Source of the DNA: Phallusia mammillata
Lineage: Eukaryota
Length of the DNA: 64,000 nt
Assembly (NCBI GenBank): GCA_965637545.1
Contig: OZ281498.1
Coordinates: 17,856,001 to 17,920,000, forward strand
Reading direction: 5' to 3'
The notes under the pieces are model-generated. The model did no database searches, was not told the DNA's origin, and worked only from the letters and a program-made list of their open reading frames with translations. Of the stretch, positions 3,783 through 11,081 are shown piece by piece. A program made the translations under genes and the position numbers. Numbering within the stretch: position 1 is the first letter of the stretch; every line of letters starts with the position of its first letter.

Positions 3783-5366
3783 CTACGTACTCGGCAATAT
3801 ACCACGCCCACATGGACAGTGCCGATACGCTTCGCCGCCTCTCATTGTCACGTGACATCCAGCGTTGCGTGTACTGCCATCTCGTGGAGGACTATCAATG
3901 AGATCAACTTCAATTTTGTCCAGCAAGTCAAGAAGGTTTAAAACACGAAACATATATAAACGCCGGTTGTTGCAACTGTGATAACAATGTAATAGGTTTA
4001 AGTATCAACACGATAAGGATAGGAAAGCTTTGGACACCAGTTTGATTTAGTACAACGCCTTCAGTAGGCATGGTTGGATTTAATAAACCAGTAAACAAAA
4101 TATATTTATGCAAATTGGTTCAATGTGACAAAAAAATTTGGTAGGAAACAAAAAAACAAATAAGAGTGAAAAATTCGGACTTTGGTTTGGTATTATCGAC
4201 AAGTCAAAACGTTCTTTCTTGAACTATTAAAAACACAAACTGTCCTGATATAGTCACTGTAATAGCATGGTACTTACCTTACGTATTCACCATTTACTTC
4301 ATACACATCCATTCTTCCAATATCAGTTTCATCCAACTGCCCTCCTGCTATTTGGATAATTGTGTTGTTGACGTCGGTTCCGTTGCGAAATGTGCTTCTG
4401 ATCGAATTTTGACTAAATCGTATTCTTGCCGGGGAAAGGCTTTCGGTCCTGCTGGATGCTCGCGTTGTGGTTGCTGCTGCGTAAAGCACAGCTGCCGTAT
4501 CAGCAACCATGGCGGCTCCTGTAAGCACCGAACCCCAACTCATCGTATTTCTGGGGCTTGTTGAGTGCACTGATACAGCACGAGAACTGGAACTGGGATA
4601 GTTTACCCTGTGGGCCACCTCCAACTGGTGGCCTAAATAGCATAATTGATTTATAAAGTTGGCAGAAAATGAATCCGCTACAAAAACGAAACACAGCTGA
4701 ATTGTTAAAATCTGTATTGACAAGGGGTGACAATTTGAATTTTATAAAACGTCTAAGCACGCGTTGACCAAGATTTGAGAAGTGTAATACCACCTACAAT
4801 TATTTATTTGTAATTCAAATTAGGTTGATTATATCCATGCAATAACAGTTAGCCCTACCTGGTAATGGTAAATGTTGTTGACTCGGACAAGTGCAGTGTC
4901 GATAGGTTTGTGCATCACCTTGCATCTTGATGTGGCATCCAGCGTTGCCAGGTGACAACATAATATCTTGGTGGGAGCCACTGATTATATCCACAATGAT
5001 AACGTCTAATTTTCCTTTCATTTCCAGCACACGAAACACATATAGACGTTGGTTGTATTTGCTGTGCAAAAACATTTAAAAAACATAACAAATTTCAGCT
5101 GGATTTCTGGTTTAGTTTGGCTTTTAGACGGTTGCTTTAGGTAATCGAATTCTATTCCACAACACGCGTTGATTATACCTGTAAAACTTGCCACGTGTCT
5201 TGAAAACCTTTATGTTTTCAAGATGTATTGACAAAGGATCATCCAGAAGTTGGTCAACTATGTAATGCACATCATCTCCACCACGAAAAACAGGCCAAAT
5301 GCTGTCTTCAGTAAAATAAATCTCCGAAGGCCTTATCTGTTTGTTTATTTCAACCACCCCTGACAT
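3783..5366 (-). CDS. Spliced gene, 312 aa, with two tandem ParB/Srx-like (Tox-ParB-like) domains each followed by a GCH-x-YRHCxC tail
   Basis: Coding exons 5366-5179, 5061-4859, 4632-4278 and 3975-3783, all GT-AG with compatible phases (2,1,2), total 939 nt ending TAG. Repeat 1: IRPSEIYFTEDSI...FYS|KYNQRLYVFRVL...NAGCHIKMQGDAQTYRHCTC. Repeat 2: LSPARIRFSQNSI...YVS|CNNRRLYMFRVL...NAGCHVTMRGGEAYRHCPC. Gene structure is well supported; the family call is from motif recall only. Confidence 0.8.
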
Positions 5367-8129
5367 GCTCAGAGAGCTCGTTTGTCCAAAGCTGTATCTT
5401 GTAACAAATATACAATTGTCATAAAAATGCCAACGACGTAACTAAATTACCCTTATATTCCTAATTATCGATTCTAAAAGTAAAAAGCAGCGCTAATACA
5501 GTAACCAGCCCAAGAACACTGGCGAAACTATATTTAAAATATACATTCTAATTAAATATTAACCCCGTGATAGAAAAGCAAACACGTGAGTATTAAGACT
5601 CTAGGAAGAGAAGTTCAAATATTATGAGACTCCGTCTAGCTAATGTTAACTTACGATGTTTAAATAGAAACTTCAGTTTCCTAAAATTAATAATTAATAA
5701 ACAAAATCGCGTTTCTAAAATACAACGTAAACGTTGTAATCGTTTCATCTACCCCAATTAATGAATTGCATTAGTTAATACATATGCTTTCAACGCAACT
5801 TTCGCAAGAGTATAGGTGGTGAATAATAACTATATTTAATAAGTTACATGTTAAACGTAATCATCTTGTTTAGTTTAAAATACTGGCGGCATCAAACGTG
5901 CGGGTAGAATCTTGATACAAATGCTTGGAAAAAATCAAAAACCTTTTAACCACAGCTACACTCAGATAGCGGTAACAAGTTTACCAATTCCTGATACGTA
6001 ATTCAAACAATTGTATTAAAAAGGGGTTGTGATTGACAAATAACTCCAGCGGTAGAGATGTGAACTACGTGAATTATGTATGTGAACGCATGGTGACAGT
6101 GTAGAGTCATGTGTTAGCAGCAGTAGTTTAAATATTGACAAGGTAGAGAATTAAGAACAAGAAACAAATCAACATGCAATTATAACCCATGCACAAACAT
6201 AAATTGATATTTTATCAAGAATTTAAGATATCCTGAAAGTTATAGTTTATCTGTTGGTGAGTAGCCAAAAAAGTAGTTTTTATGCAATGCTATAGTATTT
6301 GATATTGAAAACTTGAGAAGACTGTACTAGAGTTGGTGAATACGTTCACCACATCTCGGTACGGCCATGTAGTCTGCAGTGATTTCGTCGTTTTGGATTG
6401 CAATTATCGGTTTGACTTAAAAACTTGGCAATAAAGCATGCAATTAAAACATGTGATAAGTGATGAAAATGTAATTGTTCGACATGCGATGAAGATCATC
6501 ACCCAGTTTAGTAATTTGTATACATTAGATTTCAAGTAGACATGAAAAGCAAAGTAAATTGATAATTATTGCTTCTCTGCAAAATTGTGACTCGACAAGC
6601 AAAAGATTTTTGTCAACATTTTTTGGCCAACAACCTTTGTTCAATCTGAACCGCATTGTAGATATGGTTCATACACGCAGGTCAAAACGGTCGACGTTAT
6701 CGGTTGTGGAGCGTCTGCTTTTCACCCCCAGAAAAGTACTGCTAGGGCCACCTCGCGTACTTGTAACGCATCAATAGCTTAGTTGGTCAAGGCTTATTTG
6801 TGCTGACGAAAGACAGAATGCGCTTGGAAATGATCAATTGTGAAGATAATAACAGAGAAAGGTTCATGTGGAAATCAGTCGTCAGAGCAGATTTGTATTT
6901 GATCGTTGTGCGTAGTTGGACGTCGCAGAACTGTAGAAACAAATTTAAAATGTTTTGTACACCTTTGTCTATTGGCTTCAACGAATCAAAGTCAAAAAAT
7001 TAACTGAAAATTATTTAACGTTTCAAGGTATTGTACTTCGCTTTTCTCGCCAAATTACCTGCATCAATAAAATATCACACGTTTAAATGCAGTTTATAAA
7101 ACACGCAGATTTAACAATTGTGACTTTATGTAGCGTGCATATTTAAGGAGATAAACCAACAGTTTAAATAAATGTGTTATTTATTCGAAGTAATATATTA
7201 GATCATTGACACACAATTATATTTGCTTACATCTTACAGCACGAAATTGTCGGTTTCAGTTTACCTCCAAATTAAAAACAATTAAATGTTTGGGTACGAT
7301 GAAATTATTTTTATTTTACAACGCTCTGCTGTTCTTTAAAGAAGAAAACTAATATTTCGTTTACGAATTAGTGTGATTGCAGTAACCCATAGAAAATGAT
7401 GGAGTATGTTAAAATTTAGGCATTTCCATGCGTAATTTTAGTGCAAAACTGTACAAATGTTTGAACTGTATTGTAATGAGTTTTAGGTTTCCAATTCGTT
7501 TACTAGTTGGTAAATAAGTTGCATTAGGGAACATTTATTACACATTGGATAAATGCAGAGGTTAGGTTTGGTTCCTTTAAGAAAAATAGTAAAATCCGTA
7601 TCACTGGGTATTGGAAGATATCCTCAACTACAGTAGCCTACGTACCTGTTCTGCAAAAAAGTACGGTTCAACAAGTGACATTCAACCATAACACACTGGT
7701 GTATTTTACAGTTCATCCTAAAACAAACATTAACACGCTTCACCAATAAACCGACAAACTGTTCTCAAGCAATACACATAAGCTAGTCATTGATTTTTAC
7801 AGCTACTTGTGCAGGTGAAATATGTAAGTGTGGAAGTGAGCGAAGTACGGATCGAAATAGTTAATTGCAAACCTTAGATAACTTCAACTTTAACTTTTGC
7901 ATTATGCCATGTTGTTTCTATAGCGTGAAATATTATCTGTTTGTAAAGTTTTAGTCTAAAGAGTACGGTTGACATCATTTTCTGTAAGCTTTCAAGGGGC
8001 GAAATAACAATCTGCAAAATTGACAACTTTTTCTGCGAATAATTTAAAATTTTAAAATTTTTAAGGTATGTCTAAGAAAAGGTTACCATTTGTAGCGTGT
8101 CAAACAGGAGTTACAGAAAACCCACGAAG

Positions 8130-11081
8130 ATGCTCAACTTGTTTTTGGGTGTGTTCTCTTTACTTGTAGTCTTGTTTTTCTATTGGTGGTATCAAAAACC
8201 CGAAAAATCTCCACCGGGTCCAAGGGGACTTCCCCTACTTGGAATTCTTCCCTATCTTAGCGGTTTTCCAGAAAGAGACTTTGGCGCTTGGGGAAAGAAA
8301 TATGGTCCCATCATGTCTGTGCCAATGGGATGGAAAAACTTCGTGATTCTAAACGATTACGAAATCATCAATGAGGTAATTGTTATCATTTTTTGAATTG
8401 GTAAAAAGAAACAACAGTGCCTAAGTAATCACTAAACAGTTTAGTGAAAAGCAAAATCGTGTGGGTTAAAGTTGAAAGCGCATAAAAAGTGGAACTGACT
8501 TCTTTTTAACAAAGTATAATTTTTGCACTTTAAAACCTTAACATGAGGATGTGTGTTTTTCTTTTTGGTAGACGTTAGTTAAACAGAAAGAGGAGTTCCA
8601 GGAAAGACCCTACATACGCCCATTTCACATGTTTTCAGCCAACGGAGTTGTTATGATCACAGGAGGTCCTGTATGGCGTGCTCATCGCCGGTTTGGCATG
8701 TCAGCTATTCGAAGGTACAAACCTTAACAAACCACTGAAGTATACTCATGCACATTTGCATCTATTGATTTAACAAGACGTAACTTTTTCTTTGAGCATA
8801 CGCTTTATACTTGATTTGTTAAACAGAAATTTCCTGCAATATCTAAATTTACATCAAAAACTTTACACCCAACATACCGGGAGAATAAGTGTTCCGTATC
8901 AAATCCCACATAAATTTTTTGGCTGTGTAACATAATGTAAAAAACAATTAAAAAGCGATGCCGATCAAAACTGAAAGAAAGTTGTTGCCCAAACTCAGTC
9001 AAAAACATTTTTGGAGGTTTGGTGGCAATAAAGGTGTGATGGAGCGGAAAGTTACTGACGAAGCAATGTATCTTGTTCAAGAAATGAAGGAATTTGAAGG
9101 AAACCCCTTTAATATGCAGGTTGAAGATAAAAAAGATCATAAGTTTGTTTTAAGCTACTGTATTTAATCTTCAATCTAATTTTTTGACTAACAGTGCAAT
9201 TTATTTGCTGACAGCATGGCTGAAAATGATTATGACCAGAAATGAATTGAAACTAGGAAAGAGTTCGCTTCGACTTATACAGCTCCCAATTTTTGTTTTA
9301 AACTTTTGTATAAACTTATAATTTGTGTAAAGTGAAATACAATCAACAGAAATAATTTCGTTCAGAGTCTTTTGACAAACGCTATTGGAAATATGATCTG
9401 CAATATGATGTTCGGCAGAAGATACGAATACAATGATAAAACATTTAAAAGGCTGATTACCAACATTGTGGCGTTGTAAGTTTAAAATAAATTGTTAGTA
9501 TTGTGAAACAATGTATTTAGTTTAATATGTGGCGATTACTTTGACCACACTCACACAACAATACAACTCGAGTTTTAACTGATTTCATACTTTTCAGTTT
9601 TGAAAACTTAAGTGACTGGAAAACGAACCTTCTTATTTTTCTTCCAATTCTGTGCGACGTACCACCCTTCTCAAATCATGTTAAAAAAACTTTAGATATG
9701 GTTAAACTAATGCGAGGTACTTTGTGAATGATTTCAAGGGTACTTTTTATTACTGAGTTGTTTATTTTCTATTTTAAAACCCAGCAATAATTGATGATGT
9801 TGCCAACGAACACAAATCCACTTTTGATCGGAATGACATTCGCGATATGATGGACGGATATTTAGAGAGCTTTATTTACAAGGACGACAGTTTTGTACTC
9901 TCGGTAAGCTTTAACAGGTTTTAAGTAATCACGTTATGACCAAAAATATTTTAAGCACTGCGAGGACTTCTTCGCTGATTTATTTGTGACGGGAACAGAT
10001 TCCACTACCACCACTTTGAGATGGGCTTTTTTGTGCCTAATGCTTCATCAGGACGTCCAGGAAAAAATGATAAAGGAAATCGACGACATCATCGGTTAGC
10101 ATTCAATTCTACATTTTGAAGTGAGGCGTTGTTATGCAAAACTTGCACAAACAATCTATGAGGAGAATATCAACTGAGGAGTTTTCGTTTGATATACATA
10201 TTCGAAAACATTTATGAGCAGTGATGAGACTTGTAAAAGTATGTTTTAAGTTCTTTCCGTGACCAATTATAGATACAGTATCTCATGACAACCAAAACTG
10301 GCGTTTTTTAAAAAAGAGTTAAATTCAAAACATCTTTCTCTCCATAAACTATGTTAACTCAATGACACGCCTGACAAAATTTGAATAACATACACCAATT
10401 CTTGCTTTACAATCGTCAACATGTTCTCTGTAGGAAAAGAAGGAACACCGAGCTTATCTCACCGCGAGAAGATGCCTTACTCATGTGCAGTGCTGCATGA
10501 AGTCATGAGATTTAGGACACTTGCACCTCTTTCGGCCCCACGTTGTACTACCAAAGACGTGACTGTTCGTGGCTATCGAATACCTAAGGGCACTCAGGTA
10601 AATCGCCTTAAAAAGATATACTTGCAGTATCCTGTCCCGAATGGACTTGAATCTAGTACAAAGCAATGTGTTAAAATGAGAAACTGTCTCTCGAGGCGTT
10701 TAAACCCTATTTGCAAATGATATCAATGCAGTGGGGGAAAATTATAAATACCTATTTATTCAGGTGTTTACCAACCTCTGGCAAGTCCACAACGACCAAA
10801 CTTACTGGAAAAATCCAAACAAATTTGAACCACAGCGACACCTAGATGAAAACGGAAACTTTACCAATTCCAGATACGTGATCCCATTTGGCGCCGGGGC
10901 AAGAGTTTGTATGGGCGAGCAGATGGCGAAGACACAACTGTGGATCTTTCTTATTACTATTCTTCAGCGGTTTAGGATATCTGTCGACCCCAATGATTCA
11001 GATCCGCCATCTCTCGATGACGGAAACAACGCTCTAGCTTATATTCCACCGGCTTATAATATGATCATTTATTCGCGGTGA
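8130..11081 (+). CDS. CYP-1: cytochrome P450, CYP2 clan, intact 9-exon gene, 486 aa
   Basis: Exons 8130-8375, 8572-8714, 9017-9119, 9366-9475, 9598-9716, 9785-9903, 9956-10094, 10434-10597, 10764-11081 (1461 nt, open). N-terminal anchor + PPGP, WRAHR (WxxxR), I-helix VTGTDS, EVMR (ExxR), PQRH, heme motif [10 protein letters not shown]. Confidence 0.93.

Follow-up and report, generated by a model that had tools for sequence, protein, structure and literature searches.

The Tox-ParBL1 domain family was defined computationally among bacterial polymorphic toxins and predicted to have a ParB fold, with NGK_2271 of Neisseria gonorrhoeae as type member (Zhang et al. 2012, Biol Direct 7:18, PMC3482391). 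Unlike classical ParB, its members carry a conserved N-terminal Ser/Thr, and [NT][RT][RT], mostly N-R-R, is found where ParB has DGHHR/GERR. Bacterial members are C-terminal toxin domains placed behind HINT, RHS, FilH/VENN or MafB and followed by a small downstream gene; others were reported in metazoa, choanoflagellates and other eukaryotes (PMC3482391). A move of the domain from bacterial polymorphic toxins into eukaryotes has stood as a computational prediction since 2012; in the literature no later paper was found that uses the family name for the domain, and no eukaryotic member of known function. A ParB-fold CdiA toxin, ToxB, has been characterised: it binds and slowly hydrolyses ATP, needs the Arg of its GNHR motif for binding and activity, is an ATPase without DNA binding and is toxic across kingdoms (bioRxiv 10.64898/2026.05.05.722872). 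The gene described here lies on the minus strand, at positions 5366 to 3783, of a 64,000-nucleotide stretch of the genome of the tunicate Phallusia mammillata (assembly GCA_965637545.1, contig OZ281498.1, positions 17,856,001 to 17,920,000), referred to below as the window. It is very probably an intact four-exon tunicate gene for two tandem ParB/sulfiredoxin (Srx)-fold domains of a divergent Tox-ParBL1 type.

The gene resembles Tox-ParBL1 in its predicted fold, its N-terminal Ser/Thr, N-R-R in place of DGHHR and the bacterial warhead architectures of its relatives. It departs from the described members in its tandem two-domain layout, a central hydrophobic segment, a G-C-H...H-C-x-C signature and its introns, and from its relatives in that both repeats are without the Asp found invariably in the family alignment (A1, below). 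With ToxB, a polymorphic-toxin warhead, the tunicate domain shares the ParB-type fold, the G-N-H-R phosphate loop of ToxB standing at the D-N-R-R position; ToxB differs in being bacterial, delivered by contact-dependent inhibition and neutralised by an immunity protein. The Tox-ParBL1 kind and its metazoan presence were already known, and what is new is the undescribed tandem architecture and a tunicate-specific Cys/His subfamily.

Structure of the gene

The gene model was obtained by direct reading of the sequence. Four exons and three GT-AG introns on the minus strand give 939 nucleotides (188+203+355+193), that is, 312 codons and a stop, as follows (window positions; a slash marks an exon boundary).

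5179..5366, minus strand: exon 1, 188 nucleotides, ATG and N-terminal half of repeat 1 (M...RPSEIYFTEDSI...GKFY and the AG of a Ser codon); 3' boundary TAC AG/GTATAA
5062..5178, minus strand: intron 1, 117 nucleotides, GT..AG, phase 2, within the Ser codon AG/C
4859..5061, minus strand: exon 2, 203 nucleotides, C-terminal half of repeat 1 (S-KYNQRLYVFRVL...NAGCHIKMQGDAQTYRHCTC...); acceptor TTTGCACAG/C, donor CCA G/GTAGGG
4633..4858, minus strand: intron 2, 226 nucleotides, GT..AG, phase 1, splitting a Gly codon (G/GC) between repeat 1 and the linker
4278..4632, minus strand: exon 3, 355 nucleotides, Ser-rich linker, hydrophobic segment and N-terminal half of repeat 2 (SPARIRFSQNSI...NGEYV and AG); acceptor CTATTTAG/GC, donor GTA AG/GTAAGT
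3976..4277, minus strand: intron 3, 302 nucleotides, GTAAGT..CAG, phase 2, within the Ser codon AG/T
3783..3975, minus strand: exon 4, 193 nucleotides, C-terminal half of repeat 2 (S-CNNRRLYMFRVL...NAGCHVTMRGGEAYRHCPC...ST); acceptor TTATCACAG/T, stop TAG at 3785-3783

None of the four exons contains an internal stop, and the six splice signals are canonical throughout. The first-pass annotation of the locus had joined four open reading frame (ORF) fragments into a 312-residue protein, and this model held, with three GT-AG junctions, an exact frame and lengths that add up to 939 nucleotides. Its statement that both repeats are cut by a phase-2 intron in the same Ser codon was likewise confirmed by reading AG/C and AG/T directly: introns 1 and 3 share the domain position, the phase and the residue, and the split Ser is the nearly invariant Ser of the family motif Y-S-x-D-N-R-R-L. 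The motifs listed in that annotation (P-x-x-I-x-F-[ST]-[EQ]-[DN]-S-I, N-[QR]-R-L-Y-x-F-R-V-L and NAGCH...YRHCxC) were all present in the exon translations, as were the Ser-rich linker and the hydrophobic stretch between the repeats.

A short likeness was also seen within the gene. The first 15 nucleotides of intron 1 after the G of GT (5164-5178, minus strand; TAT AAT CAA CGC GTG) mimic the start of exon 2 (5046-5060, minus strand; TAC AAC CAA CGT CTA). The first four codons differ only at third positions, the likeness extends no further, and the intron, if retained, would likewise encode Y-N-Q-R. It may be chance, or the trace of an intron or splice-site origin.

Domain features of the two repeats

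A family profile was built from alignment A1, which holds 15 intronless paralogues and 7 database relatives. In this alignment D-N-R-R-L is invariant, and the nearly invariant positions include P11, R15, I21, Y61, S62, Y69, F71, F-T-T and G102. Each exon was compared on its own with the profile (Z=1e6). Exon 1 matched positions 4-58 (E 1.7e-6), exon 2 positions 62-115 (E 9e-8), exon 3 positions 4-57 (E 1.6e-9) and exon 4 positions 61-113 (E 3.7e-9); judged by these values, the matches are not due to chance. Since each exon matches the proper half of the profile, the intron of each repeat sits at the conserved Ser of Y-S-x-D-N-R-R-L. The features within and between the repeats are listed below.

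5046..5054, minus strand: N-Q-R of repeat 1, at the site of the family-invariant N-R-R, equivalent to E-R-R of ParB GERR
4887..4946, minus strand: Cys/His signature of repeat 1, NAGCH-x13-HCTC
4472..4537, minus strand: small-residue hydrophobic segment WGSVLTGAAMVADTAAVLYAAA, model residues 163-184
3960..3968, minus strand: N-R-R of repeat 2, where the long helix begins; predicted to form a loop that binds phosphate
3810..3866, minus strand: Cys/His signature of repeat 2, NAGCH-x10-HCPC

The N-terminal Ser/Thr strand F-[ST]-Q-D-[ST]-I is found family-wide and appears as FTEDSI in repeat 1 and FSQNSI in repeat 2. Repeat 2 keeps IRF (in IRFSQNSI), the DSI-type Ser, N-R-R-L-Y-x-F-R-V-L and the C-terminal N-x-G. 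Repeat 1 is the more diverged copy, as had been proposed: it lacks two family-conserved Arg residues, the nearly invariant R15 (IRF to IYF) and the invariant R66 (NRR to NQR), and has LSP where the family has FTT. The last Arg of N-[QR]-R is present in both repeats.

The Cys/His tails, read earlier as additions to each repeat, are present in both; they are not an appended finger, being in part the substituted C-terminal strand of the family itself. They correspond largely to the family C-terminal element N-D-G-x-S-[VI]-x-[VM]-R-G...H, in which Cys-His stands for x-Ser, and the C-x-C comes after the conserved His. In the segment between the repeats the best 19-residue Kyte-Doolittle window scored 1.57, which is borderline for a membrane helix. 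An intracellular location is likely, because the N-terminus is not signal peptide-like and the domain begins almost at once; the protein starts a few residues ahead of the domain, as in the paralogues.

Fold of the domain

AlphaFold2 models were made of one intronless paralogue (L024:1793-2173:-) and of one natural Ciona protein with the same Cys/His signature (P0122:1-145), to which the window repeats are tied exon by exon through the profile. The paralogue model had a mean predicted local distance difference test score (pLDDT) of 89.9 and a predicted template modelling (TM) score of 0.85; the Ciona model had a pLDDT of 92.1, with 90-96 over the Cys/His region. When both models were compared with the PDB by Foldseek, the top 50 matches all belonged to the ParB/Srx superfamily (best E 3.4e-4 for the paralogue and 1.4e-4 for the Ciona protein, probability 1.00). 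They included Atu1540, ParB with CDP or CTPγS, Noc, KorB, sulfiredoxin, PadC, SbnI, SerK and pNOB8 ParB, and in the lists of both models the structural neighbours with ligands all bind nucleotides. In both models the long helix starts at N-R-R, where ParB has its phosphate-binding GxxR loop. By hhalign, 231 family segments aligned with seven ParB N-domains at a marginal P of 0.009, placing N-R-R on E-R-R of GERR. The models thus support a ParB/Srx-type fold, and the uniform top 50, with VIA-align Z up to 7.6, bears out the fold resemblance that had been noticed from the letters. A homodimer prediction for Ciona P0122:10-140 scored 0.00 and counts neither for nor against pairing of the domains.

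The tunicate domain shares with the canonical ParB/Noc/KorB CTPase N-domain and with sulfiredoxin the core strand-helix arrangement and an Arg-rich loop at the N-terminus of the helix. Unlike ParB, Noc and KorB, it is without helix-turn-helix, dimerisation domain, ParA-binding motif and Box I/III conservation. Unlike sulfiredoxin, it is without the catalytic F-G-G-C-H-R, its Box II position being D/N/Y-N-R/Q-R. The possibility that GCH of the Cys/His signature is the sulfiredoxin GGCHR was considered and rejected, as GCH lies about 40 residues after the Box II position, in the last strand.

Neither the four exons nor five full-length paralogues had a meaningful match in Pfam (E up to 10) or NCBIfam, and the same exons and paralogues failed to match PF02195 (ParB_N; Box I / GERRxRA / Box III). 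A PDB sequence search with one protein and with a profile returned matches at chance level only (phytase; KMT2C SET domain, E 0.12). Of the Tox-ParB-like identity given in the first-pass annotation, the ParB-like toxin family stands; the domain is of a divergent Tox-ParBL1 type, not classical Tox-ParB/ParB_N, and is without a match in Pfam.

Relationship to bacterial toxins

Tox-ParBL1 has no Pfam or NCBIfam model, and membership was assessed from the published description. A ParB/Srx-like fold, the N-R-R motif, the N-terminal Ser/Thr and toxin architectures with a small downstream ORF were all found. Among database relatives, the domain of P0004 and P0005 comes immediately after ...HTYYV..VLVHN, which scored as an intein/Hint C-terminal region, and that of P0169 comes after an RHS core. 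A scan of bacterial genomes gave 13 loci with 31-45% identical domains (Streptomyces, Paenibacillus, Motiliproteus, Clostridia and others). In RHS-repeat proteins of Streptomyces (1917 amino acids) and Paenibacillus (1755 amino acids) the domain is the last ~100 residues, and a small unannotated ORF follows both toxin genes. A fold search of the ESM Atlas with the Ciona model returned eukaryotic clusters (Mollusca, Cnidaria, diatoms) and bacterial clusters carrying PT-HINT, RHS/YD-shell, PT-VENN and MafB (TM 0.58-0.72 by query), the cluster containing MafB matching at TM 0.58 over 100 residues. The proposed likeness to the C-terminal domains of bacterial Rhs toxins was thus upheld by the RHS C-termini, the Hint-adjacent copies and the Atlas clusters, which together support the view that in bacteria the homologous domain is the C-terminal toxin part of Rhs/Hint polymorphic toxins.

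The ORFs directly 3' of the bacterial toxin genes (L039:6470-7252:+, L045:6275-6703:+ and L049:6326-6706:+) are candidate immunity proteins for ParBL1-type toxins. They had no match in Pfam or NCBIfam and belong to no recognisable immunity family there.

Distribution and phylogeny

In an exhaustive profile search 4387 cluster representatives passed E<=1e-3, of which 2077 also passed E<=1e-10; many of the proteins have two or three domains. Tunicate members came from Styela clava, Ciona intestinalis, Clavelina lepadiformis and Phallusia mammillata, bivalve members from Mya, Tegillarca, Mizuhopecten, Pecten, Potamilus and Mercenaria, and other eukaryotic members from the annelid Dimorphilus, Octopus, the hemichordate Glandiceps, Monosiga and Symbiodinium. 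The named eukaryotic members are all annotated as 'uncharacterized', the genes of the family receiving no more than 'uncharacterized protein' because no Pfam model exists. A Pfam scan of ten long eukaryotic members found no informative fused domains. A word search with a Styela alignment headed by P0008, in which the exons were separate rows, gave many relatives, among them neither the window protein nor its paralogue on contig C4 (below); a word search with exon 3 alone as query gave no match. Tunicate relatives often have a second domain in tandem that is partly degenerate (P0011, P0012, P0014 and P0019).

A maximum-likelihood tree was calculated from 54 domains, 12 of them bacterial, drawn from outside the window gene; it gives no direction of transfer. 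All 12 bacterial sequences fell in one group (100/99), with the tunicates, unresolved, on the other side. Since the sampled bacteria form one separate group, the animal genes are not nested among the sampled bacterial toxins, and the nesting that the first-pass annotation had named as a sign of horizontal transfer was not seen. Introns, composition, paralogues and tree gave no evidence of recent gene transfer.

Variation was seen at the C-termini of relatives. P0008 (Styela clava XP_077973299.1, locus L055), which has two repeats, ends in C-T-I-L, a CaaX-like prenylation box, and its first repeat ends similarly in W-C-N-C-T-L; other relatives end in Cys clusters (e.g. FCCCG in P0147). Lipid or membrane anchoring may be recurrent in the family.

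The tunicate Cys/His subfamily and duplication of the module

All four domain copies of the window gene and the C4 paralogue carry the signature G-C-H...H-C-x-C. It is also present in Ciona XP_078487949.1 and XP_078492252.1 (P0122/P0132) and in Clavelina XP_076825270.1, XP_076825483.1 and XP_076805106.1 (P0055/P0147/P0180), and four of these five database proteins cluster in the tree (87/87). A phase-2 intron in the Ser codon (AG/T or AG/N) also occurs in Ciona XP_078487949.1 (P0122) and Clavelina XP_076825270.1 (P0055); Clavelina XP_076805106.1 lacks this intron, as does the two-repeat gene of Styela, where each repeat is encoded by one uninterrupted exon. A tunicate subfamily is defined by G-C-H...H-C-x-C in the last strand and tail together with the Ser-codon phase-2 intron in most members. 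The Ciona proteins XP_078487949.1 and XP_078492252.1 and the Clavelina proteins XP_076825270.1 and XP_076825483.1 share the signature and the 87/87 grouping; they differ from the window protein in having one domain and, after it, a tail of low complexity; second repeat and central hydrophobic segment are both absent.

The suggestion that a two-exon module was duplicated is well borne out, the position and phase of the intron being common to both repeats, the C4 paralogue, Ciona XP_078487949.1 and Clavelina XP_076825270.1. The intron shared by Ciona and Clavelina indicates that the two-exon module predates the divergence of these ascidian lineages.

Paralogues in the Phallusia genome

The Phallusia genome (240 Mb) was searched in six frames with exons 3 and 4, and also with the profile. 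The exon queries gave >30 related places and the profile search 51 matches at E<=1e-5, about 40 of which are complete domains in single open frames. The paralogues lie on five chromosome-sized contigs. The largest group is a tandem array of ~32 single-exon copies in 90 kb at C7 22.00-22.09 Mb (22000001-22100000, loci L021-L030), and smaller groups were found at C7 17.99 Mb, C6 8.02-8.09 Mb, C2 27.57 Mb and C5 3.77/6.49/27.38 Mb. The gene had earlier been taken for a lone domesticated toxin; it is instead one of about 40 genomic copies, in a family that extends across tunicates, bivalves and other eukaryotes.

The C7 array looks like a fast-turnover gene cluster. Some of its blocks are near-identical duplicates (e.g. 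the L026 and L028 copies), and six or seven copies have internal stops. One of its members, L026:2994-3410:-, was almost identical in tree distance to P0015 (Phallusia mammillata CAB3263313.1).

The only intron-split loci in the genome are the window gene and the C4 paralogue (G000:C4:20506837-20511124), in which the start and the three intron positions and phases are identical to those of the window gene. Its hydrophobic segment, AVAAGVVGGLALIGYGIYQLM, is at the same place, scores 1.61 and is followed by KVRKR; here too, repeat 1 is the weaker of the two (IHF). Identity between same-numbered exons of the two genes was 40% for exon 1, 55% for exon 2, 44% for exon 3 (domain part) and 65% for exon 4. 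Every window exon was nearest to the C4 exon of the same number (positionally orthologous), from which it follows that the internal duplication is older than the duplication that gave the two genes. The proportion of nonsynonymous differences between them (pN) was 0.31 and that of synonymous differences (pS) 0.77; pS being saturated, dN/dS is not computable for this pair and the pN/pS contrast alone is usable. The contrast is the pattern that long-term protein-level constraint would produce.

In the window, the GC content of the gene (37%) is the same as that of the remainder. A neighbouring gene on the plus strand, at 8097-11081, consists of cytochrome P450 exons, with the N-terminal motif at 8097-8396 (plus strand) and the heme-binding loop at 10731-11081 (plus strand).

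Proposed function

In the proposed mechanism each domain would have a nucleoside triphosphate (NTP) as its ligand. The phosphates would be held where the long helix begins, by the N-R-R loop, in the manner of GERR in ParB and GNHR in ToxB, and the strand F-[ST]-Q-D-[ST]-I would bring its conserved Ser/Thr close to this site. Within the cells of the animal itself the protein would then work through NTP, by binding it, hydrolysing it or using it for phosphotransfer. Of the two repeats, the second (NRR, IRF) would be the competent site and the first (NQR, IYF) a weakened or regulatory one; a regulatory role is plausible because repeat 1 of the C4 paralogue is also weaker (IHF). By analogy with the systems named above, such a nucleotide-dependent mechanism appears about as likely to hold as to fail. 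The two-domain ParBL1 gene taken together with this mechanism is the explanation that we favour, by a slight balance of probability.

Two structural additions are put forward tentatively. From residue conservation and the confidence of the model in that region, the Cys/His cluster might bind Zn and stiffen the C-terminal hairpin. From its borderline hydropathy (1.57; 1.61 in the C4 paralogue) and conserved position, the Ala/Gly-rich central segment might attach the protein to a membrane, which is put forward with similar reserve.

Several observations tell against the favoured explanation. The 312-residue protein and its fragments had no match in the protein database searched, and in the literature no measured activity was found for any family member. 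The fold similarity is moderate (TM 0.40-0.48; VIA-align Z 5.6-7.6, below 8), and a 22-sequence profile aligned with the seven ParB N-domains by hhalign was not significant (E 0.14). The family fits Tox-ParBL1 by matching the published description, the link to NGK_2271 running only through the structure of the MafB cluster, and ToxB was found through PF02195 (classical ParB_N), which the tunicate domain fails to match. The invariant Asp of D-N-R-R is replaced in both repeats (by Y and N); with this loss, and that of two Arg in repeat 1, catalysis may have been lost. The Zn-binding proposal rests on conserved residues, and the hydrophobic segment includes an Asp and just reaches the Kyte-Doolittle threshold (1.57).

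The loss of the Asp from both repeats, together with NQR and IYF in repeat 1 and the frequency of partly degenerate tandem second domains in tunicate relatives, would also be expected if the domains were genuine ParBL1 folds that are no longer enzymes, serving as an adaptor or a nucleotide-gated switch, for example as decoy or regulator of the single-domain paralogues. This is unlikely on balance: N-R-R-L-Y-x-F-R-V-L, IRFSQNSI and the C-terminal N-x-G all survive in repeat 2, both repeats retain the last Arg, which is essential in ToxB, and the residue preceding it varies in active enzymes (E/R, N/H). A DNase or RNase effector, the 'ParB-like nuclease' reading, is conceivable for ParB-type toxin domains, nucleases dominating polymorphic toxins (Zhang et al. 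2012, PMC3482391). The same authors called the original ParB nuclease claim ill-founded (PMC3482391), the sole characterised ParB-fold toxin is an ATPase without DNA binding (bioRxiv 10.64898/2026.05.05.722872), the DGHHR metal site is absent and the structural neighbours with ligands all bind nucleotides, so that a nuclease is improbable.

Other explanations concern the standing of the locus itself. It could be an unexpressed relic, a decaying duplicate of a fast-turnover family with a fortuitously clean splice model, given that it has no match among database proteins or fragments derived from transcripts, some family copies have internal stops and key residues of repeat 1 are substituted. 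Set against this are the open exons and six canonical splice signals, the excess of pS (0.77) over pN (0.31) relative to the C4 paralogue and the intact C-H...H-C-x-C in 4/4 domain copies of the two genes, and a relic is held to be slightly less probable still than a nuclease. A domain 31-45% identical occurs in RHS toxins of bacteria, as it would if the locus were a recent bacterial insertion or assembly contamination; the three spliceosomal introns, a GC content of 37% as in the window, the animal P450 exons nearby, about 40 paralogues on five contigs, homologues in other tunicate genera and the separate bacterial group (100/99) leave it next to no probability. Contamination or recent transfer from bacteria was rejected on introns, composition, paralogues and tree.

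Significance

The favoured explanation, a two-domain ParBL1 gene with a nucleotide-dependent mechanism, leaves the biological role to conjecture. The tandem expansion and fast divergence of the family would fit conflict or immunity better than a housekeeping task. In a more elaborate scenario, which we consider rather improbable, the ParBL1 warhead of bacterial contact toxins would have been recruited independently by ascidians and by bivalves and multiplied into a large family of fast-evolving effectors that serve immunity or allorecognition inside the cell. The window protein, with its two domains, Zn stabilisation and a membrane tether, would be a sensor or regulator among them, its degenerate repeat 1 controlling the active repeat 2. 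If true, such control within one molecule would parallel the nucleotide-clamped ParB dimer or a toxin-immunity pair.

The subfamily is recognisable by its shared intron and Cys/His signature, and the window gene offers a clean testable case, its two domains differing naturally in the predicted active-site Arg residues. A first toxin of ParB fold is now known to be an ATPase. With domains this small (~125 amino acids), the use that an animal makes of such a module could be revealed by ordinary biochemistry.

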